Sequence record: LR756511.1
Reading direction: 5' to 3' (one strand)
Length of the DNA stretch: 64,000 nucleotides
Numbering within the stretch: the first letter of the stretch is position 1; each line of letters starts with the position of its first letter. The translations under genes and the position numbers were made by a program. Of this stretch, positions 1-9,090 are shown piece by piece. The notes beneath the pieces are model-generated. The model did no database searches, had not been told where the DNA came from, and saw nothing but the letters and a program-made list of their open reading frames with translations.

Positions 1-205
1 CATTTTGCGTGGCACTAAATTTAGAACCAACTTTACAAGTGGGCATCACCACATCAAAAAGGATGCGGGTGAATTTGTTGGTTACAAAAAATTCATCTGC
101 GGGATGATTAAAACAATACCAAGTTATAACAATTTTTACAATGATGTCCTTAAAGAAGATATTGCCAAACTTTACAACAAAGATATTGCTGGACTTGGCT
201 TATAA
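1..205 (+). CDS. Partial CDS (C-terminus), possibly sulfotransferase-like
   Basis: Frame open from window start to TAA 203-205; C-terminal YxxFYxxxxxxxIxxLYxKDI resembles Sulfotransfer_2 C-terminus. Confidence 0.35.
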   Translation, partial: ILRGTKFRTNFTSGHHHIKKDAGEFVGYKKFICGMIKTIPSYNNFYNDVLKEDIAKLYNKDIAGLGL

Positions 206-206
206 A

Positions 207-395
207 CTACTTAGTTTTTGCTATATCTACTTCGCTATGCCATTGTAACTTGCCATCCTTGTCTACGACTTTGTATTCGTGTAAAGGAGGCAGTTGCATG
301 TCTTGCTGTTTAATTGTTCTAATGTCGGTAACAAAGCCTACATAACTGTCGGTCGGCCTTACTACTCTGACTTTTTCACCTAATTGAATATCCAT
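207..395 (-). CDS. Hypothetical protein, 62 aa (MDIQLGEKV...)
   Basis: ATG 2 nt downstream of the tRNA-Leu(TAA) discriminator; the ORF-track start at 440 lies inside the tRNA. Confidence 0.65.
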   Translation of the reverse strand: MDIQLGEKVRVVRPTDSYVGFVTDIRTIKQQDMQLPPLHEYKVVDKDGKLQWHSEVDIAKTK

Positions 396-397
396 AG

Positions 398-483
398 TGA
401 CCAAGGTGGGATTCGAACCCACACGGAGTAAAAACTCCACCAGGGTTTAAGCCTAGCGCGTCTACCAGTTCCGCCACATGGTC
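398..483 (-). tRNA. trnL: tRNA-Leu(TAA)
   Basis: Cloverleaf GACCATG...CTTGGTC-A; anticodon arm CTAGG-CTTAAAC-CCTGG; long variable arm; GGTTCGAATCC; no CCA. Confidence 0.95.
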
Positions 484-484
484 A

Positions 485-748
485 TTAGTAATCATCGTAA
501 CCACCTTGAGAAGAATAATAATCTTCCCAAGCTTCTCTACGTATCTTATCTATAATCTCCTGTTCCCGTATCTCGTCTAATGACGGATAACCGTTAGCTT
601 GTCGGTCATCTCCAGCGTTAATTAGTTTTGATAGTTGTAAACTTGGGTCTGTTGCATGGGCATCCCCGTAATAGTATTCGTATTTACATTTAGGGCAATA
701 ATCTCTTCTTGCACTACTAACCATGTCTGGATGTTCGCAGAAACTCAT
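485..748 (-). CDS. Hypothetical protein with CxxC, 87 aa
   Basis: GAGG RBS; CPKC; stop 1 nt before the next tRNA. Confidence 0.7.
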   Translation of the reverse strand: MSFCEHPDMVSSARRDYCPKCKYEYYYGDAHATDPSLQLSKLINAGDDRQANGYPSLDEIREQEIIDKIRREAWEDYYSSQGGYDDY

Positions 749-767
749 TTTTTAACCCTCTTAGTAG

Positions 768-851
768 TGGCCGAAGTGGGAGTCGAACCCACACTCCCTT
801 TCGGGAACCAGATTTTGAGTCTGGCGCGTCTGCCAGTTCCGCCATTCGGCC
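768..851 (-). tRNA. trnL: tRNA-Leu(CAA)
   Basis: GGCCGAA...TTCGGCC-A; CCAGA-CTCAAAA-TCTGG; long variable arm. Confidence 0.95.
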
Positions 852-852
852 T

Positions 853-1017
853 TTAATCTATCCACGGACCATTCTTCTCTTTAATTCTATACTTTCTACA
901 CTTGCGTAAGGTTTTACACCTTTCCATTTCAACCACACATTCTTCAAATGTTCCTTCAAAGAATGTCCATGACCAAGCCTCTTGATCCCATTCGAATAAT
1001 TCATATAATTTCTCCAT
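853..1017 (-). CDS. Hypothetical protein, 54 aa (MEKLYELFEW...)
   Basis: ATG 2 nt after tRNA-Leu(CAG); TAA 1 nt before tRNA-Leu(CAA). Confidence 0.6.
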   Translation of the reverse strand: MEKLYELFEWDQEAWSWTFFEGTFEECVVEMERCKTLRKCRKYRIKEKNGPWID

Positions 1018-1019
1018 AG

Positions 1020-1101
1020 TGACCGAGGTGGGATTCGAACCCACACCCCTTTCGGGACAAGCTTCTGAGGCTTGCGCGTCTACCAGTTCCGCCACTCGGC
1101 C
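1020..1101 (-). tRNA. trnL: tRNA-Leu(CAG)
   Basis: GGCCGAG...CTCGGTC-A; CAAGC-CTCAGAA-GCTTG. Confidence 0.95.
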
Positions 1102-1103
1102 AG

Positions 1104-1271
1104 TTAGTATTTCAAATCACTTTTGTTTCCACCCTTGTTCAAGCGGTCAATAATTGCGGACGGGAATTCTTTGGTAGGTTTTCCCCACCATTTCCCCATC
1201 TTGCGATCCCATATCTGCCATCCTTTAGGTGGATTCGCTCTGACACAATATCTAGCGTTCTTCTTACCCAT
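1104..1271 (-). CDS. Hypothetical protein, 55 aa (MGKKNARYCV...)
   Basis: ATG 2 nt after tRNA-Leu(TAG); TAA 2 nt before tRNA-Leu(CAG). Confidence 0.6.
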   Translation of the reverse strand: MGKKNARYCVRANPPKGWQIWDRKMGKWWGKPTKEFPSAIIDRLNKGGNKSDLKY

Positions 1272-1273
1272 AG

Positions 1274-1355
1274 TGACTACGGTGGGAGTCGAACCCACAC
1301 CCCCGAAGGGACAAGTTTCTAAAACTTGCGCGTATACCGATTCCGCCACGCAGCC
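1274..1355 (-). tRNA. trnL: tRNA-Leu(TAG)
   Basis: GGCTGCG...CGTAGTC-A; CAAGT-TTTAGAA-ACTTG. Confidence 0.95.
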
Positions 1356-1357
1356 AT

Positions 1358-1507
1358 TTACTTCATCATCTTGCGTATCTTTTCGCTTACACAATACGTT
1401 ACCAATAAAGCGGGCACTACAATCATCCAAAAATAAGTAAGCTTAACCTTCTCCCAAAAACTAGCTCTTTCCCAAATCCTATTGTGATATTCAATACTTG
1501 TATTCAT
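1358..1507 (-). CDS. Small membrane protein, 49 aa (not in ORF track)
   Basis: MNTSIEYHNRIWERASFWEKVKLTYFWMIVVPALLVTYCVSEKIRKMMK; ATGA overlap with upstream stop; TAA 2 nt before tRNA. Confidence 0.55.
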   Translation of the reverse strand: MNTSIEYHNRIWERASFWEKVKLTYFWMIVVPALLVTYCVSEKIRKMMK

Positions 1508-1806
1508 TTTATTTGCTCGTAATTCAATTGAACAGGCTTGTCGTCGTATACTGTTATTTGGAAATTCTTATCCATAAACAAAATGTGATAAGGGATTTCT
1601 AGGAGTTTTAGATGTTCCTCTGTGATAGCTCTGAACTCTTCTCTACGACTCGTCCATATTATAATATGGACGCCAGTTTCATATTGTTTTCTTAACTCAT
1701 TGACTATTTCACTTTTGACTTTTAGAACAAATATACCTTTATCGGGGTCTGTTCCGTCTTCCACTAAAGTTCCGTCAATATCATAGATTCTAGTATGGTG
1801 TTTCAT
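1504..1806 (-). CDS. HAD-superfamily phosphatase-like protein
   Basis: YDIDGTL (DxDxT), WTSR, YDDK motifs; ATG 4 nt after tRNA-Tyr. Confidence 0.75.
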   Translation of the reverse strand: MKHHTRIYDIDGTLVEDGTDPDKGIFVLKVKSEIVNELRKQYETGVHIIIWTSRREEFRAITEEHLKLLEIPYHILFMDKNFQITVYDDKPVQLNYEQIK

Positions 1807-1810
1807 TTAG

Positions 1811-1893
1811 TGCGTATGGTAGGAATCGAACCTACAAAGCCCGAAGGCGACAGATTTACAGTCTGTGGGACTCACCACCTGTCCAACATACGC
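1811..1893 (-). tRNA. trnY: tRNA-Tyr(GTA)
   Basis: GCGTATG...CATACGC-A; ACAGA-CTGTAAA-TCTGT; long variable arm. Confidence 0.93.
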
Positions 1894-2160
1894 CTAATTA
1901 CATTCTTGTCTTCCTTTAGATAATTTTATCAAAAAGAATCCAGGTATCTCACCTTCTTCATCAACACAAAGTAAAACTCTATCATCTACTTTAGGTTTAA
2001 ATTCATGACAATGTTCTATCTTTACTTTTACATCGCCGCCACCATGACCAGCATTAATGTTGGCGGTTACAATGCCTTCTTCGATAGATTTTATTCTACC
2101 AACGTTTCTGTTGGCACATTTATAGAACATGCCAAGTTGAAGTTGCTTTTTCTTTTTCAT
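1894..2160 (-). CDS. Hypothetical protein, 88 aa
   Basis: ATG 2 nt after the second tRNA-Tyr; TAG directly abuts the first tRNA-Tyr. Confidence 0.65.
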   Translation of the reverse strand: MKKKKQLQLGMFYKCANRNVGRIKSIEEGIVTANINAGHGGGDVKVKIEHCHEFKPKVDDRVLLCVDEEGEIPGFFLIKLSKGRQECN

Positions 2161-2162
2161 AA

Positions 2163-2244
2163 TGGGTGAGTGAGGAATCGAACCCCTTAGCTCTTAGGCA
2201 GTCGGGTTACAGCCGACTTAGCTTCCCACAGCGGTAGCTCACCC
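2163..2244 (-). tRNA. trnY: tRNA-Tyr(GTA), atypical second copy
   Basis: GGGTGAG...CTCACCC-A; GTCGG-CTGTAAC-CCGAC; C8 and irregular D arm. Confidence 0.85.
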
Positions 2245-2255
2245 TAAACATACAG

Positions 2256-2339
2256 TGGCCTTGGTGGGATTCGAACCCACACTCCCTTACGGGAACAACG
2301 CCCTCAACGTTGCGCGTCTACCAGTTCCGCCACAAGGCC
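2256..2339 (-). tRNA. trnL: tRNA-Leu(GAG)
   Basis: GGCCTTG...CAAGGCC-A; CAACG-TTGAGGG-CGTTG. Confidence 0.95.
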
Positions 2340-2340
2340 A

Positions 2341-2637
2341 TTATCACTTCTTTGCTTCGTCAAAGAATATTTTGGAACATTCTGACAACTTAGTTTTAGT
2401 ATAACGTTCTCCTGTTTTCAACCAGAAAAAGTCATAAATCTCTTTAATGGCTTGAACCAAGCCTTGCTCGTTCAACTCACCTCTGTAAGCTGCCAAGCGG
2501 AAACTAGGTCAGCCAAATTCAGGACATATTAATCCTTGCGTTAGTGGAAGTCTGTAACCATCTCTCCAAGCCCAACAGCGAGGATTAGTCCATTCTTCAA
2601 TACGTTTGCCAACGACGATCAACTCTTGCGGTGTCAT
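2341..2637 (-). pseudogene. About 97-codon ORF interrupted by an in-frame TGA (2511-2509); pseudogene or readthrough
   Basis: GGAGGGAG RBS, ATG 2637; 42 codons, TGA, then 54 more in-frame codons to TGA-TAA ending 1 nt before tRNA-Leu(GAG). Confidence 0.55.
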
Positions 2638-2667
2638 AACTCCCTCCCAATTAAAAGGGTATATATC

Positions 2668-2967
2668 CTAATATCGGTAAAAAGGCGAGTTGCCATTATA
2701 CAAAACATTCGGCCATTTTCTGTCATGTAAGATTTTCTTAGCTCTAATTAGAGCATAAGTCCATTTCCTGTTTGGGTTATCATCTTCGCTTAGAAACACT
2801 TCGGGGTCAACCCCATGTTTCTCGCAAAAGTTTCTGCACTGTCTTTCTTCGACAGGTAGCCATTTTTGATTCCATTGAGCTTTAAAGACAGCATAACGCT
2901 GCTTTTTGCCTCTGTAACCAAAACGACTTTTATTGCCCGAAGGCTTGATTTTAATTTTATTCCACAT
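2668..2967 (-). CDS. Hypothetical protein, 99 aa (MWNKIKIK...)
   Basis: ATG 2 nt after tRNA-Ser(TGA); the ORF-track start at 3021 is inside the tRNA. Confidence 0.65.
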   Translation of the reverse strand: MWNKIKIKPSGNKSRFGYRGKKQRYAVFKAQWNQKWLPVEERQCRNFCEKHGVDPEVFLSEDDNPNRKWTYALIRAKKILHDRKWPNVLYNGNSPFYRY

Positions 2968-2969
2968 AG

Positions 2970-3054
2970 CGGAAAGGGTGGGAGTCGAACCCACAGAGCC
3001 TTTCGGCCCACTCGTTTTCAAGACGAGGTAGAGTAGCCACTCTCAATCCAATCC
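2970..3054 (-). tRNA. trnS: tRNA-Ser(TGA)
   Basis: CTCGT-CTTGAAA-ACGAG; long variable arm; G73; two U-U mismatches in acceptor stem. Confidence 0.85.
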
Positions 3055-3059
3055 AGAAG

Positions 3060-3146
3060 CGGAGGATGCGAGAGTTGAACTCGCCAACCCCTTTCGGGGT
3101 TACTCGTTTTCGAGACGAGGGGGCTTGCCACATGCCCAAATCCTCC
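3060..3146 (-). tRNA. trnS: tRNA-Ser(CGA)
   Basis: GGAGGAT...ATCCTCC-G; CTCGT-CTCGAAA-ACGAG. Confidence 0.93.
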
Positions 3147-3150
3147 AAAT

Positions 3151-3215
3151 TTAGATGAAAGCTGGTAATACGGTTATCGGTATTCCGCGTTTATACCGCC
3201 AGTTCTTTCATCTAA
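3151..3215 (-). ncRNA. Candidate structured spacer RNA (about 65 nt)
   Basis: Closed by perfect 11-bp TTAGATGAAAG/CTTTCATCTAA, with inner CTGG/CCAG and CGGTAT/ATACCG stems. Confidence 0.45.
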
Positions 3216-3216
3216 G

Positions 3217-3304
3217 CGGAACAGGAGGGATTCGAACCCTCTCCACACAATTAAGGTGGCCAGCTTTCCAGGCTGGTGTGACTCTCCAACTTCACCGCTG
3301 CTCC
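3217..3304 (-). tRNA. trnS: tRNA-Ser(GGA)
   Basis: GGAGCAG...CTGTTCC-G; CCAGC-CTGGAAA-GCTGG. Confidence 0.92.
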
Positions 3305-3308
3305 ATAA

Positions 3309-3429
3309 TTTCGGTAACAATAAGCTTATGTGGAGTTTGCACTATGAGCTAAGCAAGGCCACATTTCAGTGGCTCCCCAGCCATCCACGCTCTATTGCTC
3401 ATGCGTGAACCGCTACATTGTTACCGAAA
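3309..3429 (-). ncRNA. Candidate structured spacer RNA (about 121 nt)
   Basis: Closed by perfect 13-bp TTTCGGTAACAAT/ATTGTTACCGAAA; inner ATGAGC/GCTCAT and GCCAC-TGAAAT-GTGGC stems. Confidence 0.5.
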
Positions 3430-3430
3430 G

Positions 3431-3520
3431 CGGAAGCGGCGGGAGTCGAACCCGCAAGGCGGCGATATGCCGCCTGCCTGTTTAGCAAACAGGGTAGAAT
3501 AGCCACTTTCAATCACTTCC
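3431..3520 (-). tRNA. trnS: tRNA-Ser(GCT)
   Basis: GGAAGTG...CGCTTCC-G; CCTGT-TTGCTAA-ACAGG; long variable arm. Confidence 0.92.
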
Positions 3521-3550
3521 AAATGGCAATACCGAATTGTCAAAGATACA

Positions 3551-3593
3551 AAAACAAAAAACCCGCCGTGACTTTTCAGCCACGGCGGGTTTC
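3551..3593 (-). terminator. Intrinsic terminator (attenuator) upstream of the tRNA array
   Basis: AAACCCGCCGTG-GCT-GAAA-AGT-CACGGCGGGTTT followed by a U tract; GNRA tetraloop supports minus orientation. Confidence 0.85.
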
Positions 3594-3617
3594 TACCCGT
3601 TGTTTCCGCTAAGCCTA

Positions 3618-3701
3618 CTAAGTCCCCCTTCGCACGTTGCTATAAAGCAACGACGATAGTGAATAACTGGACAAACGTAAGCTAGCAGAGAAAGTATGCA
3701 C
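3618..3701 (-). CDS. Ser/Leu/Tyr-rich leader peptide MHTFSASLRLSSYSLSSLLYSNVRRGT (not in ORF track)
   Basis: AAGGA RBS 8 nt before GTG; 15 of codons 5-21 are Ser/Leu/Tyr; ends TAG TAG. Confidence 0.8.
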   Translation of the reverse strand: MHTFSASLRLSSYSLSSLLYSNVRRGT

Positions 3702-3759
3702 GGTTATATTCCTTTCAGATATTGTATGCAGCAACCAAAGATTTTTGCTGCACAATTTC

Positions 3760-3787
3760 ACTTTACCACGAAAAAACCCATTGTCAA
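3760..3787 (-). promoter_or_regulatory. Sigma70-type promoter of leader/tRNA operon
   Basis: TTGACA-N16-TAAAGT with extended -10 TG. Confidence 0.7.
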
Positions 3788-3826
3788 GAAAATTTTTCTC
3801 GACTCAGCCGTTTGTACAGCTGCAAC

Positions 3827-4705
3827 TTACAGGGCACCCTTCAAATCCTTGAAGACATCACTACCAGGAATATCCTTATTCTGCTCGTCCTTGAGTCCAA
3901 ACCATATCCCTTCGTAATTCTCCGCACTTAATGGCGGCTGGGGCACTGGTCTTCCCATAATCTCAGCAAACTCTGACGCATTAATCAAGTAAACCTTCGC
4001 TATTTTTTCTGGAGATTCTTTCCAAACCTCAATTCCATGCGGGTCTTCATAGATTTTCTGCTTAATCTTTCCGCCCTTTCCCATTCCCATCTCATTAGCA
4101 CAGCAAGCTCTACTACCGCGACAGAAATCCATCATGCTGTCCGCTTGACAGATACCAGCGCTACAATAGTCTAAGTCCCCCAATTCCGATGGTCCCCACT
4201 TTTCATGTGGGTCAGAAACGTGTTTTAATTGCTCTGGATGTTTTGCCTTATAGACAGAAATCGAAATTGCGTGATCGTCCGTTTTGGCTAATTGTTCACC
4301 AATAGTCTTATTTTCACCAACACTGGCCGACACAAACTGATAAACACTTCCATCATCACTCTTCCATCCATCTAACCACGGCTGAGGCGGGGTAACTAAA
4401 TAACCATCTTTCTCTAAATTTTCTCTTAACTTATTGCCATTTAAGGAGTTAACAGTTCCAGCGCCAATTATAACGGCGAGTGGTTCGCAAGTTTGGAAGT
4501 TCATCCACATAGCTTCTTGATCGTGCATTGTAATGAAATATGCATCATGATTCCAATGTTTCGGGACACGATCTTTATAATCTGAAACCTTATGAAGCTC
4601 AAAAAGACCTAAACTTGGGGGTAAATTAGCGGCTTCATTATTATCTCTGACGCGGACTGTTTTATGAAAAGTAACAGATAATGGACCAATTTCTAGTGTT
4701 TGCAT
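3827..4705 (-). CDS. Conserved uncharacterised protein (LPPxLG / EAMW / QPWLDG / QFV motif family)
   Basis: Motif order matches a family I recall from bacteria and fungi; unverified. Confidence 0.6.
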   Translation of the reverse strand: MQTLEIGPLSVTFHKTVRVRDNNEAANLPPSLGLFELHKVSDYKDRVPKHWNHDAYFITMHDQEAMWMNFQTCEPLAVIIGAGTVNSLNGNKLRENLEKDGYLVTPPQPWLDGWKSDDGSVYQFVSASVGENKTIGEQLAKTDDHAISISVYKAKHPEQLKHVSDPHEKWGPSELGDLDYCSAGICQADSMMDFCRGSRACCANEMGMGKGGKIKQKIYEDPHGIEVWKESPEKIAKVYLINASEFAEIMGRPVPQPPLSAENYEGIWFGLKDEQNKDIPGSDVFKDLKGAL

Positions 4706-4734
4706 TTTGTATCTCCTTGACTATATAATAGCAA

Positions 4735-5091
4735 ATGAGATCGTTTCGTCAATACATCACTGAAGTTTTGTTAAATGAACAACCACCTCCAGGCGGATTG
4801 CCACCAATGGGCGGTCCCCCAGGCGGCGGATTAGGCGCACCCGCAGGATTACCTCCAGGTGGGCCATCATTAGGCGGTCCTCCAGGTGGACCCCCAGGTG
4901 GCGGACTCCCACCATTGGGAGGCGGCGGCGCAATGGGCGGTGGCGCTCCACCGATGGGTGGACTTGGCGGGCCACCAATGGGCGGCGCTCCAGGTGGGCC
5001 AGGAATGGGAGGAATAGTAAAATTGCCAGAATTGAACGTCTGGAAGATTTTGGAGAAATTACTTTCAGGCGGTGATACTAAAAAGCATTGA
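4735..5091 (+). CDS. Gly/Pro-rich putative internal virion protein
   Basis: N-terminus MRSFRQYITE resembles the T4 capsid-targeting sequence; low-complexity GPPGG repeats. Confidence 0.7.
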   Translation: MRSFRQYITEVLLNEQPPPGGLPPMGGPPGGGLGAPAGLPPGGPSLGGPPGGPPGGGLPPLGGGGAMGGGAPPMGGLGGPPMGGAPGGPGMGGIVKLPELNVWKILEKLLSGGDTKKH

Positions 5092-5116
5092 TTGTTTTTC
5101 AGAATCTTGCCATAAT
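5088..5116 (+). promoter_or_regulatory. Sigma70 promoter giving a leaderless mRNA
   Basis: TTGATT-N17-CATAAT, ATG 7 nt downstream, no SD. Confidence 0.55.
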
Positions 5117-5123
5117 CTAAATT

Positions 5124-6167
5124 ATGAGCAAGATTCTTTTATTTAGTGACATTCACATCGCCCAGCACAAAAAATCGTACGAAAGATTACAGGACTGTCT
5201 CAAAGTTCTCGATTGGGTCTTTGAGACAGCCAAGAAATTAAAAATCAAAGATATCGTATTTGCGGGTGATCTATTTCAAGATCGTCAGCGCATCGACATA
5301 GCGACATATAGCCTTACGTTTGATGTTCTGTTGAAACATTGTGATGGTAGTATAAACCTGTGGTTGTTGATCGGCAACCACGATATGTGGTACCACGATA
5401 AGTGGGATATCAGTAGTGTCCTACCTTTTTCCGCACTTCCTAATGTTACTGTAATTAACAAGGCTTGTACGCTTGAAATCAATGGGCATCCTATTGATTT
5501 CCTTCCCTATGTCCGCGATCCAATTGAACACTTAAAGACCATTCAACAGTCCAAAGTGCTAGTGGGGCATTTAGCTATTCACGGCGCTGAATTACATTCT
5601 CTCTTCCATACACTGTCAGATGTCATTCTTGAGCATGATGGCGACATGGTGAAAGTAGGACCAGAACTCTTTAGCGGGTGGGATAAGGTCTTCCTTGGTC
5701 ATTATCATGGTTGTCAGCAGATTGAAAACATCGAATATGTAGGCTCGCCGCTTGAGTTGAATTTCGGTGAAGCTTATCAGGAAAAGCATTTGATTGTTTA
5801 CGATCTTAAAACTGGTGAGCAGGAATATATCATCAATGATTTCAGTCCGAAGCATTTAGTTCTTAACGAAGAAGAAATCGACAACCAGGAATTCGAAAAC
5901 AACTTTGTTCGCCTTAATGTGGTCAACAAGAAAGCAATTGATTTGCTTGACCTGAAGAAGAACATTCAGGAAAAGAAGCCTGGAACGCTGGAGATCGTTC
6001 AGCGTCCAAAGAAAGAGCAAAAGCAAGTTGTTGAAGACGCAAAATCAATTTTGCACAAGGAAGATGAAATGCTAGAAACATACGTCAAAGAAGTAGACAC
6101 TGGCGATCTTGATAAGCCCCATCTTGTTGAGGTGGGCAAAGGCATCTGTGCGATAGAAGTGTCCTAA
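5124..6167 (+). CDS. sbcD: SbcD/Mre11-like nuclease (T4 gp47-like)
   Basis: Metallophosphoesterase motifs SDIH, GDLF, GNHD, GHL, LGHYH, YVGSP. Confidence 0.92.
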   Translation: MSKILLFSDIHIAQHKKSYERLQDCLKVLDWVFETAKKLKIKDIVFAGDLFQDRQRIDIATYSLTFDVLLKHCDGSINLWLLIGNHDMWYHDKWDISSVLPFSALPNVTVINKACTLEINGHPIDFLPYVRDPIEHLKTIQQSKVLVGHLAIHGAELHSLFHTLSDVILEHDGDMVKVGPELFSGWDKVFLGHYHGCQQIENIEYVGSPLELNFGEAYQEKHLIVYDLKTGEQEYIINDFSPKHLVLNEEEIDNQEFENNFVRLNVVNKKAIDLLDLKKNIQEKKPGTLEIVQRPKKEQKQVVEDAKSILHKEDEMLETYVKEVDTGDLDKPHLVEVGKGICAIEVS

Positions 6168-7065: not shown

Positions 7066-9090
7066 ATGCGAAATCTCAATTTCAAATACGCAAAAGCACA
7101 GAACTTTCTCTGCTTCGGCAACGAAGGAATAGAAATTAATTTCGAACAATACGGGAATATTGTCTGTATAAAAGGTAATAATCTCGATGTTTGTAACGAC
7201 GACGGTTCTATTGCTTCCAATGGTTCTGGCAAATCCTCCATACCAGAAATCATAGTCTATGGTTTGTTCGGCAAGACAATCAAACAGCCGAAAAAACTAA
7301 ACCATCCAGACATCATTAACAACGGAGCAGAAGGAAAGTTAGTTGTCGAAGTGCGATGGGACGATTATAGAGTGGTTCGCACCAGGACCGCCGACAACAA
7401 GATGACTTTACGACTATGGGAAAGTGCTGAAGGCATATGGAATGACGACACAGAAATATCCAAGGGTGCTGGTTCGCAGAAACTTATTGAGGAAAAGCTT
7501 AAACTAACATACGAAGCATTCATCAATATCTTCATCTTTAGTGATGATAACACTTTTCCATTTTTAGAGTGTGATACAGGCAAGAAGCGCACTATTGTTG
7601 AGAACCTTCTTTCGCTCGACAAATACCGCAATTACTTTGAAGCTGCCAAGAAATCCTTAAAGGATTTGAAGGATAAGATTAAGGATTTAACTAAGGAGTA
7701 TGAACTTCTTAATCAGCAGAAGGATGCTGGAGCTACGCGCATTACGCAAGTTGAACGACAGGAGAGGGACTGGTTGGACGCCAGGAAGAAGGAATTAGAT
7801 AGAATCCTGTCTGAAATTAAGTCAAAGCGTGACGAGCTTGAAAAGTCTGGTAGTGGTGCCGCTCTAGCGACCTACCAAGAAGCTCAAGAAAGAATTGCAG
7901 AACTCAAGCAGCAAATTCCAACATTAGAGGAGCGAAAGTCGAAGCTTAATGATGTAATTGCGGAGATTACGCCTAAATTAGACATCATTCTTGAGAAGGT
8001 TTCTACGTGCGAGAAGGACTTGTCAGGATTAAAGGTCCAGGTAGAGCCTGTAAAGAAGTCGGTTAATGAGAACCGAAAGATCGTTGATGATATTGAGAAG
8101 AAAAGCGGCAAAGAATGCCCGTATTGCCTCAGTGTTGTTGAAGAGAAGAATTTTGAAACAATTCTCACCAAGGCGAGAGACATTCTTTCCGTCGATGAAC
8201 CTAAACTGGCCAATTTAGAGACTCAGTACGAAGAGGCTCGGACACGTCATGCCAGTGCGATTGAACTCAAACAAAGAATTGAGAAAGGTATTGCTGAATG
8301 TAAGACCAAGCTCAACAAGGTCAATTCTGATATTAGTGAAGTTTATTGCGACATCACAGAGCTATCCAAGATACAGAAACCAGATTCCAATGTGGCTGAG
8401 CTTGTGTTGGCTGAGCAAATTGAGTCATTAAAGAAGCAAGCTGTTGAAAAGCAGGAACTAATCGACGGTCCTAGCCCGTATGTTGATATTAAGAAAACCG
8501 CTTTTGATGAATTGGCACAAAAGATCAAAGAATGCGACGAGAAGAAGGATGAAGTTAAGAAGAATGAAGATGAAGTGCCGTATCATGATTTCTGGCTGAA
8601 GGCGTTTGGTGATACTGGCATTCGTAAGTATGTTATTGATGGAATTATTCCTACGCTGAATGATCGCATCGAATATTGGTTGCAATTCCTGATCGACAAT
8701 AAGATCAAGCTTACCTTTGACAACGAATTGAACGAAACGATTGATCGGTTTCCGTTCAATGGAAGACCGTACGTTTATCACGGCATGTCGGGTGGACAGA
8801 GGCGACGGTTGAAGTTAACTGTTGCGGCGGCTTGGGCATTCATTTCTGCTTTAAATTCTGGTGCATCTCCCTCGCTTATTTTCCTTGATGAAGTTACAAT
8901 GAACATGGACATTGTTGGTATTCAAGGAATTTATCGCATGATTTGTGAGCTTGCCAAAGAGAAACAAGTGTTCGTTATTGACCACAATGAAACTTTGTTG
9001 CAAATGCTTGAAGGGTGCGATGTTATAGAACTTGAGATGAAAGATGAAATTAGCAGGAAAGTGGTTGACACTTCTTCCACTTCCAGCTAA
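7066..9090 (+). CDS. sbcC: SbcC/Rad50-like SMC ATPase (T4 gp46-like)
   Basis: Walker A NGSGKS, coiled coil, zinc hook CPYC, signature MSGGQ, Walker B IFLDE. Confidence 0.92.
   Translation: MRNLNFKYAKAQNFLCFGNEGIEINFEQYGNIVCIKGNNLDVCNDDGSIASNGSGKSSIPEIIVYGLFGKTIKQPKKLNHPDIINNGAEGKLVVEVRWDDYRVVRTRTADNKMTLRLWESAEGIWNDDTEISKGAGSQKLIEEKLKLTYEAFINIFIFSDDNTFPFLECDTGKKRTIVENLLSLDKYRNYFEAAKKSLKDLKDKIKDLTKEYELLNQQKDAGATRITQVERQERDWLDARKKELDRILSEIKSKRDELEKSGSGAALATYQEAQERIAELKQQIPTLEERKSKLNDVIAEITPKLDIILEKVSTCEKDLSGLKVQVEPVKKSVNENRKIVDDIEKKSGKECPYCLSVVEEKNFETILTKARDILSVDEPKLANLETQYEEARTRHASAIELKQRIEKGIAECKTKLNKVNSDISEVYCDITELSKIQKPDSNVAELVLAEQIESLKKQAVEKQELIDGPSPYVDIKKTAFDELAQKIKECDEKKDEVKKNEDEVPYHDFWLKAFGDTGIRKYVIDGIIPTLNDRIEYWLQFLIDNKIKLTFDNELNETIDRFPFNGRPYVYHGMSGGQRRRLKLTVAAAWAFISALNSGASPSLIFLDEVTMNMDIVGIQGIYRMICELAKEKQVFVIDHNETLLQMLEGCDVIELEMKDEISRKVVDTSSTSS

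Follow-up and report, generated by a model that had tools for sequence, protein, structure and literature searches.

We analysed a 64,000-nucleotide stretch of DNA, hereafter called the window, which is a 100% match to record LR756511.1 from an unannotated, uncultured phage (595,163 bp; window base 1 is record base 434,001). On the minus strand of the window, a short open reading frame (ORF) rich in Ser, Leu, and Tyr codons lies between a promoter and an intrinsic terminator, upstream of an array of 11 transfer RNA (tRNA) genes for the same three amino acids. We consider it likely that this locus is a ribosome-mediated (leader-peptide) transcription attenuator that controls the tRNA array and senses the very tRNAs it controls. 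The phage would probably produce these tRNAs only when their supply to ribosomes is short.

Ser, Leu, and Tyr tRNAs are the class II tRNAs of bacteria, which have a long variable arm. The regulation of phage tRNA genes is largely unknown, and the reason why phages carry such genes is debated, the two views being codon compensation and the replacement of tRNAs destroyed by host defence. In the present study, we examined the codon content, conservation, and folding of the leader, and the tRNA content of the arrays behind related leaders.

Leader elements and codon content

The elements of the locus are as follows, from the promoter to the array. P1, P2, and P3 are the helices of a hairpin around the ORF.

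3760-3787, minus strand: sigma-70-type promoter, TTGACA-N16-TAAAGT, with TG ahead of the -10 hexamer
3725-3754, minus strand: 5'-terminal stem-loop of the leader transcript, 10-bp stem in the minimum free energy fold
3720-3730, minus strand: conserved motif TGCATACAATA (TGCATATATTA in relatives), between the promoter and the Shine-Dalgarno (SD) sequence
3710-3714, minus strand: SD sequence AAGGA, 8 nucleotides ahead of the start codon GTG 3701
3618-3701, minus strand: leader ORF of 27 codons plus stop (GTG...TAG), M/V-HTFSASLRLSSYSLSSLLYSNVRRGT-stop, followed by two further in-frame TAGs
3639-3689, minus strand: regulatory zone, codons 5-21, with 8 Ser, 5 Leu, and 2 Tyr codons
3677-3689, minus strand: 5' arm of P1 (region 1), codons 5-9, from folds and covariation
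3605-3618, minus strand: 3' arm of P1 (region 2), beginning at the last base of the stop codon; its predicted partners are the P1 5' arm and, with a ribosome stalled upstream, the terminator 5' arm
3622-3672, minus strand: P2, GTCC 3672-3669 with GGAC 3625-3622, around P3, from folds
inside P2, minus strand: P3, 3656-3646 with 3641-3630, from folds
3595-3599, minus strand: CGGGT, a mimic of the base of the terminator 3' arm, which pairs with ACCCG 3590-3586; core of the predicted antiterminator
3547-3594, minus strand: intrinsic terminator with a 17-bp stem (3594-3557), GAAA loop, and T tract, -29.9 kcal/mol
3532-3546, minus strand: boxA-like element TCTTTGACAATTCGG, between the terminator and the first tRNA gene
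397-3520, minus strand: array of 11 class II tRNA genes, with small ORFs between some of them

A preliminary description of the window had listed the promoter, the SD sequence, the 27-codon ORF at 3701-3618, the GNRA-capped terminator, and the array on the minus strand, and all were found where it had placed them. It had also taken GTG 3701 as the start codon, which is plausible given its proximity to the SD sequence; a program-made ORF that starts at the upstream GTG 3761 was rejected, as this codon lies inside the -10 hexamer. The promoter agrees with the sigma-70 consensus at 10 of 12 positions. Relatives keep the -35 sequence TTGACA and a TAnnnT -10 sequence, as well as the SD sequence in the form AAAGGA, and have a smaller hairpin at the position of the 5' stem-loop. 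In the window sequence, the interval from the terminator to the first tRNA gene has no evident promoter; expression of the array thus needs read-through.

The array encodes, in order, tRNA-Ser with anticodons GCU, GGA, CGA, and UGA, tRNA-Leu GAG, two tRNA-Tyr GUA, and tRNA-Leu UAG, CAG, CAA, and UAA. These 4 Ser, 5 Leu, and 2 Tyr tRNAs have an anticodon set able to read every Ser, Leu, and Tyr codon. As noted in the preliminary description, 15 of the 17 codons in the regulatory zone of the leader (VHTFSASLRLSSYSLSSLLYSNVRRGT) specify these same three amino acids. Ser is encoded by all six of its codons, Leu by TTA, TTG (twice), CTA, and CTT, and Tyr by TAT (twice). The locus has a short SD-led ORF just past a promoter, regulatory codons cognate to the downstream products, an intrinsic terminator, and a codon placement that would leave region 2 uncovered by a stalled ribosome, as in known attenuators. 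Classical attenuators precede genes for amino acid biosynthesis or aminoacyl-tRNA synthetases; because the downstream genes here are tRNAs, the locus would be a variant rather than a classical attenuator.

The codon bias of the ORF is extreme. Ser, Leu, and Tyr account for 58% of the window leader and for 17.8% of the long ORFs of the phage (binomial, 6e-6). The stretch with 15 of 17 such codons is the single maximum among 59,612 stop-free 17-codon windows in the six frames of the 64-kb sequence, and dinucleotide-preserving shuffles of the ORF reached this number in only 0.18% of trials (P = 0.0018).

To collect homologous leaders, we used the flanking gene for a 292-amino acid protein (3827-4705) as a query and retrieved 13 viral and 80 metagenome loci. 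A homologous leader occupied the spacer wherever a class II tRNA array followed this gene. Leaders were present in 11 other phage contigs, one of which (L002) was cut by the contig end, so that the full-length leaders numbered 11 including that of the window. The flanking protein is only 41-72% identical across these loci, and the leaders keep the SD sequence, start, reading frame, stop position, and terminator, with Ser, Leu, and Tyr making up 46-62% of the codons. The preliminary description had proposed a search of related contigs for this enrichment, and the bias is indeed conserved ahead of class II arrays. The deduced leader peptides are as follows.

L003: VHTFSASLLLSSYYSLLSLSSARRWTN
L004: VHTFSVNLLSSYYSLSLSLSSAGRWTE
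L015: VHTFSAILLLSSYYSLSLLQSAGRWTE
L017: VHTFSANSSYYSLSLSLSARI
L006: MFNLSVSLLSSLSSLLYSNAGRGTE
L007: VFNFSVSLLSSLSSLLYSCAWTGTE
L020: VFNFSVSLLSSLSSISSLLYSSAETGTE
L079: VVTFSASRLSYYSSLSLSLRLSDDGGGSV
L013: MIRSTISSTKSLSKYSLFNLNSTGETS
L014: VISFSACLLYSLCLLSSLFLSGLDRLAV

The bias outlasted dinucleotide shuffling in all 11 leaders, with P from <0.0002 to 0.014. No leader contains a Pro codon, although the sequence is pyrimidine-rich. Ser, Leu, and Tyr codons make up 57% in the frame of the ORF; the two alternative frames, in which stops are usual, have 26% and 21%. The ORF varies from 21 to 29 codons with the frame always kept, and it ends in TAG, TAA, or TGA, a stop that varies in type but not in its place in the structure. 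The order of the Ser, Leu, and Tyr codons is permuted between relatives and the composition is kept, which argues for selection on codon content and against a conserved peptide. Synonymous-codon diversity exceeded expectation in L007 (P = 0.002), L015 (0.003), and L017 (0.02), with the window at 0.056. The placement of the codons is also regular. Positions -8 to -21 before the stop are Ser, Leu, or Tyr in 8-11 of the 11 leaders, and each of the last five codons is so in one of 11; the Ser/Leu/Tyr codons end about six codons ahead of the stop. This placement fits the geometry of an attenuator, because a ribosome stalled in the last five codons would mask region 2.

Both strands of every locus were scanned blind, and the combination of a Ser/Leu/Tyr-rich ORF and a terminator was found only at these leaders. 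When six leaders were used to build a covariance model, it recovered 12 of 12, including L013 and L014, which had not been used as seeds; the 595-kb genome as a whole gave exactly one match, and 783 kb of unrelated viral DNA gave none. Because a specific DNA pattern search of IMG/VR returned known contigs only, the leader family appears to belong to a small clade of very large phages. A loose pattern scan of viral contigs gave 116 chance matches and no leader, and a BLAST search against cultured phages gave the source record and generic tRNA matches, with no cultured relative.

These data bear on the possibility that the ORF encodes a functional small Ser/Leu-rich peptide, or that the terminator just ends the upstream operon and the ORF is coincidental. 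Small hydrophobic peptides are common in phages, and the terminator follows a gene on the same strand (3827-4705). However, it is the composition of the peptide, not its sequence, that is conserved; a promoter stands between the upstream gene and the leader, where relatives have an extra gene as well; and the leader occurs only ahead of class II arrays, once per genome. The first rank among the 59,612 windows and the shuffles exclude chance. We give very little credence to either form of this explanation.

Folding and the proposed switch

The leader of the window folds with z = -6.8 relative to shuffles. All leaders share the same architecture, a long hairpin around the ORF (P1 outside, P2 and P3 inside) followed by the terminator, and in all of them P1 pairs codons 5-9 with a segment that starts at the stop codon. 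In a model-guided alignment, which was fitted to the model and is therefore somewhat favourable to the structure, 91% of cells were paired and 23 of 37 pairs showed compensatory changes; none of 500 shuffles was as good, and slid controls gave 34-44%. Compensatory changes occurred in four of nine pairs of P1 and seven of 11 pairs of P3, and P2 was conserved. P3 is the pairing between segments 1 (3656-3646) and 2 (3641-3630) that the preliminary description had predicted. The two terminator helices (helices 4 and 5) were 100% paired, with compensatory changes in 11 of 13 pairs. The small CGGGT-AGAA-ACCCG hairpin, also predicted earlier, is present in the window and in most homologs with altered sequence (CAGG:CCTG in L020). 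The terminator starts about 24 nucleotides on from the stop codon, where the P1 3' arm begins.

The switch was simulated with a transcript that ended at the 5' arm and loop of the terminator, with or without a ribosome footprint. In the simulation without a ribosome, P1-P3 formed and the P1 3' arm was sequestered. With a ribosome at the stop codon, only the small CGGGU-ACCCG hairpin was left (-1 to -8 kcal/mol). A ribosome stall within the Ser/Leu/Tyr zone freed the P1 3' arm, and in each of the 11 full-length leaders this arm and the CGGGU mimic paired with the 5' arm of the terminator, giving a predicted antiterminator of 9-16 pairs and -12 to -23 kcal/mol; in the window it formed with stalls at codons 8, 12, 17, and 21. 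The native duplex between region 2 and the terminator arm (-14.9 kcal/mol) compares with a mean of -8.5 for the 49 other terminators of the genome and is within the best 2%. The preliminary description had expected mutually exclusive helices, and the simulated stalls did form an antiterminator. It had named segment 2 as the partner of the terminator arm; this pairing is feasible at -12.2 kcal/mol but was not formed in the simulated stalls, and the chief partner is instead the P1 3' arm, which overlaps the stop codon, together with the mimic. As modelled, the pairings would follow the classical 1:2, 2:3, and 3:4 logic, with mixed statistics for the antiterminator.

The attenuator would work as follows. 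With an ample supply of charged Ser, Leu, and Tyr tRNAs, the ribosome would reach the stop codon and cover the P1 3' arm, or P1 would re-form after release. With this arm unavailable, the terminator would fold and the transcript would end after about 200 nucleotides. A lack of any one of these tRNAs, or its uncharged or damaged state, would stall the ribosome in the Ser/Leu/Tyr zone, where it would hold the P1 5' arm and leave the P1 3' arm free. The free arm and the CGGGU mimic would then pair with the 5' arm of the terminator while its 3' arm is still to be transcribed, which would allow read-through. The new tRNAs would restore fast translation of the leader and turn the array off again, so that the locus would act as a negative-feedback homeostat for class II tRNA supply. 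Such a sensor would read charged, decodable tRNA and for this reason could respond as well when a host defence cleaves these tRNAs or prevents them from being charged.

The stable and covarying fold could also mean that what is conserved is an RNA structure made up of P1-P3 and the terminator, which might serve as a protein-binding element, a signal for processing, or a small RNA, with an ORF that is not translated or whose translation is irrelevant; the terminated transcript of about 200 nucleotides would be a discrete RNA. However, the SD sequence and start are conserved, the frame is kept through insertions and deletions (21-29 codons), and the type of stop codon varies at a fixed position. 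The frame-specific bias that survives shuffling, the permuted codon order with kept composition, and the match between leader composition and array content described below also speak against it. An Rfam scan of 1-6000 gave no known leader (Leu, His, Thr, or Trp), T-box, or riboswitch; the sole non-tRNA match on the leader was rnk_pseudo, with 23.9 bits (gathering threshold 55) and E = 0.95. We regard a purely structural role as improbable.

A polymerase that reads through the terminator would meet the boxA-like element. The motif TCTTTGAMAAYTYGG occurs once per locus in eight distinct contigs, always between the terminator and the first tRNA gene and 14-50 nucleotides ahead of the latter (window 3532-3546, minus strand; L003 7710-7724; L004 7543-7557; L006 7427-7441; L007 7459-7473; L014 7428-7442; L015 2163-2177; L020 2098-2112). 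The window has the variant UCUUUGACAAUU, and L003 and L015 have UGAUCUUUGAAA; the E. coli consensus is UGCUCUUUAACA. At 12 of 13 positions the motif matches the boxA consensus of E. coli and B. subtilis. It nearly matches the E. coli rrn boxA-spacer UGCUCUUUAACAAUUUA (PMC2724277) and the NusB-binding consensus of B. subtilis AUGAUCUUUGAAA (PMC13753749). The element is a candidate site for the loading of NusB/S10, which would give processive antitermination across the untranslated array. Nus factors would probably load there and bring the polymerase into a termination-resistant form, as in rrn operons.

The class I tRNA array contains a similar sequence, GGTCTTTGACAACTT, upstream of its tRNA-Val gene (record ~277,390). 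The TTGACA within the boxA-like motif was rejected as a -35 element, as the start site would fall inside the tRNA. In L014 (~7300-7420), the terminator and the boxA-like motif are separated by a tRNA-like sequence (GCCGCTCTGGTGTAGGGG...GGTTCAACTCCGTGGGGCGGCA) that ARAGORN does not call.

The end of the window leader has three in-frame TAGs within four codons (TAG TAG GCT TAG, 3609-3620), and the next in-frame stop is a TGA in the terminator loop. The phage has a tRNA with anticodon CUA (record 179,588-179,661; L101), labelled tRNA-Pyl by ARAGORN, which is a potential amber suppressor. If TAG were suppressed late in infection, the ribosome on the leader would run into the terminator.

Leader codons and array content

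The phage has about 62 tRNA genes in total and a transfer-messenger RNA (record 341,280-341,632, tag ANPEFAMAA). The class I tRNA genes are clustered at record 233-278 kb. The class II genes occupy a separate stretch (427.7-437.5 kb, all on the minus strand) and are found almost only in the leader-preceded array. The class I array begins with a nearly identical promoter, a hairpin, and a TATATTA-type motif, and then leads straight into tRNA-Met; no leader, ORF, or terminator was found upstream of this gene. With longer flanks, the arrays behind leaders of the window type contained Ser, Leu, and Tyr tRNAs only, up to 16 over 9 kb.

Where arrays contain other tRNAs, leaders tend to contain the corresponding codons. 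The array of L116 (= L012) consists of Ser, Leu (four), Tyr, Gln (two), and Ser tRNAs, and its leader MFHRTLSSSRLSSLQQGYQRSLQLLG (86-166) has four Gln codons; 17 of its 25 codons are cognate to its own array (p = 7e-8). The array of L120 (= L014) adds two Cys and one Phe tRNA, and its leader holds two Cys codons. In L057, the leader (260-343) is rich in Ser and Leu and has Cys and Trp codons, with Trp and Cys tRNAs downstream. The L116 and L057 leaders are high-GC and look nearly leaderless, with an ATG a few nucleotides after the predicted start site. L121, from a distant high-GC phage, has an array of Arg, Ser (four), Gly (three), Ala (three), Trp, and Cys tRNAs. Upstream of its tRNA-Arg (6867) are a promoter, an SD sequence, and a 49-codon ORF MTLQIINRRAYCPAAAPLAAAAAGSCSGSWSGAGTEPSSGALSRQRRPV (7023-6874, minus strand), which uses 22 of the 23 possible codons of Ala, Ser, Gly, Arg, Cys, and Trp (P = 0.0002 under the codon usage of the locus); its stop codon lies 5 nucleotides ahead of the tRNA, with no canonical terminator. 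Pooled Fisher tests of codons against array tRNAs gave 0.002 for Gln, 0.018 for Cys, and 0.0003 for Ala, the last being confounded by GC content. No leader was found upstream of the tRNA arrays of L122.

The comparative evidence as a whole (conserved bias, covarying helices, codon geometry, and the match between leader and array) supports the attenuation logic of the preliminary description, with the antiterminator re-assigned as above. Several observations nevertheless weigh against it. The pooled tests were not significant for Gly, Arg, Trp, and Phe. The L110 leader has a Tyr codon and its array has no tRNA-Tyr, and the short L057 contig shows no tRNA-Leu. Raised synonymous-codon diversity is limited to some lineages and is absent in L006 and L014, so that the use of all six Ser codons, which the preliminary description had pointed out, holds for the window and is only a trend across homologs.

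Other points concern the antiterminator. In the clade of the window it is no better than in composition-preserving dinucleotide shuffles (z ~0); of the 11 leaders, L013 and L014 are the two in which it does beat them (z ~ -3.6), and the other nine show no advantage. The shuffles are uninformative for the clade of the window, because the G-rich region 2 pairs with C-rich arms anyway. The GC-matched set of terminators is tiny (n = 6), and one of the six was as good as the native terminator. The register of the antiterminator differs between clades, with no positional covariation. Swaps of terminators among leader lineages showed no preference of a leader for its own partner, a comparison that is uninformative because all have the same motifs. 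At -29.9 kcal/mol, the terminator greatly exceeds the antiterminator (-14) in stability; therefore, the choice between them must be kinetic, as in trp. The high-GC leaders L116, L057, and L121 have no canonical U-tract terminator, and therefore at least these must work differently.

It is conceivable that the leader ORF senses Ser/Leu/Tyr decoding but that its translation acts on transcript stability, on the access of Rho, or on processing of the RNA (by RNase P or RNase E at the first tRNA) instead of on a trp-type competition between terminator and antiterminator, possibly with the opposite sign. The L057 and L121 ORFs, which end 5-8 nucleotides before the first tRNA without a terminator, and the L116 leader, which has no U-tract terminator, favour such an output, as do the weak antiterminator statistics in the clade of the window; a role for Rho or Nus factors at the locus is suggested by the boxA-like site. 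However, the window family always has a very strong, covarying intrinsic terminator between the ORF and the tRNAs, the Ser/Leu/Tyr codons shun the last five codons as hairpin competition predicts, and region 2 paired with the terminator arm in all 11 simulated stalls. Positive feedback, in which less tRNA leads to less expression of the array, would make little biological sense. We consider this alternative unlikely, and attenuation at the intrinsic terminator remains our preferred interpretation.

Neighbouring genes, known systems, and significance

Every leader has a motif of the form TGCATA(T/C)A(T/A)TA between the sigma-70-type promoter and the SD sequence, preceded by a small hairpin and an A-rich stretch; its TGCATA part is invariant in 10 leaders. 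GCGTATATTAG also occurs upstream of the ORF-less class I array (record ~278,060, L099). The motif may be a second, phage-specific promoter or a processing site.

The 292-amino acid protein (3827-4705, minus strand) adjoins the class II array in many relatives, and 283 metagenome relatives were confirmed by tblastn. It gave no Pfam, PHROG, or PDB sequence match, and its AlphaFold model was poor (pLDDT 61) with no fold match. In relatives, an extra gene lies between it and the leader promoter (L003 6852-7210, L004 6834-7250, L006 6860-7180, L007 6850-7180), which encodes a Tyr/Gly/Trp-rich protein of 110-140 amino acids with an N-terminal signal-like sequence; the window does not have this gene. 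Among the ORFs between the tRNA genes, that at 1504-1806 (minus strand) encodes a 100-amino acid HAD/polynucleotide-kinase-phosphatase-like protein (PHROG 1238, E = 6e-11; also PNK PHROGs and a weak match to Pfam HAD_PNKP), which may be related to RNA repair inside the tRNA array. The ORFs at 485-748, 1894-2160, and 2668-3021 gave no matches. One called tRNA in L003 (9553-9633) has an irregular anticodon.

The phage leader resembles the trpL, hisL, leuL, thrL, pheL, and ilvL/ivbL leaders in its promoter-proximal SD sequence, its short ORF with a run of regulatory codons, and a stop codon adjoining a segment with two alternative partners, predicted here to be an upstream segment and the terminator 5' arm; in these leaders, as is predicted for the phage leader, 1:2 pairing gives termination when there is no translation. 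Several amino acids would be sensed at once, as in the ilv leaders. Unlike all of these, it would control tRNAs and not biosynthetic enzymes, so that the sensor would measure the class of product that it regulates. Its codons are mixed, sampling most synonymous codons with no homopolymeric run, the ORF lies inside one long three-part hairpin, and the element is phage-encoded and matches no Rfam leader.

In pheM-pheST and the T-box, a component of translation is likewise regulated by the charging of the cognate tRNA through a choice between terminator and antiterminator. However, pheM controls a synthetase, and the T-box binds uncharged tRNA directly without a ribosome; a specifier loop and T-box sequence were not found in the phage leader. 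The antitermination system of rrn operons (boxA, NusB/S10, NusA, NusG, and SuhB) has a similar arrangement, with a boxA site between the promoter region and the structural RNA genes and a hairpin at the 5' end of the transcript. The putative phage site differs in lying downstream of a regulated terminator, ahead of tRNAs. Mycobacterial leaderless poly-Cys short-ORF attenuators are another parallel, in which short ORFs rich in codons for a single amino acid tune a downstream operon, which may be compared with L116 and L057; the genes described there are for Cys metabolism and not tRNAs (bioRxiv 10.1101/834739).

Phage tRNAs can replace host tRNAs inactivated by defence, as described in reports on T5 against PARIS or retron effectors and on anticodon-loop variants of mycobacteriophages (PMC11464382, PMC11555353, PMC10264068). 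The class II array may share this role of replacement. The titles and abstracts found mention no regulatory sensor upstream of the tRNA genes, whereas here expression appears to be coupled to tRNA shortage. MenT3 targets tRNA-Ser, and MenT3/AbiEii-type nucleotidyltransferases block aminoacylation at the CCA end (bioRxiv 10.64898/2026.01.19.700257). It is a speculation that such blocking of class II tRNA charging is the reason for a class II leader; a ribosome-based sensor would read that defect. Bacterial Schlafen was considered as a class II-specific nuclease and rejected, as the paper gives cleavage in the anticodon arms of tRNAs from host and phage and states no class II specificity.

A full-text literature search gave no account, phage or bacterial, of leader-peptide control over tRNA genes. 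The mechanism would belong to classical attenuation, from which it departs in targeting tRNA genes, in its feedback topology, in sampling mixed codons of several kinds, and in residing in a phage. More tentatively, huge phages might run programmable 'codon-sampler' circuits, in which a mini-ORF with nearly every codon of the downstream tRNAs continuously assays how well the cell can decode and switches on the matching array when any isoacceptor fails. The sampler would co-evolve with the array, and the class II case may be an inducible counter-measure against host systems, such as MenT3/AbiEii-type nucleotidyltransferases, that disable tRNAs with a long variable arm.

If our interpretation is correct, this locus is the first case known to us of tRNA genes under leader-peptide control, and tRNA supply would be feedback-regulated at the level of charged, usable tRNA. 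It would provide a testable link between tRNA-targeting immunity or starvation and the expression of phage tRNAs. As the element is small (about 240 nucleotides), modular, and apparently re-programmable by codon changes, it would also be a useful synthetic sensor of isoacceptor availability.

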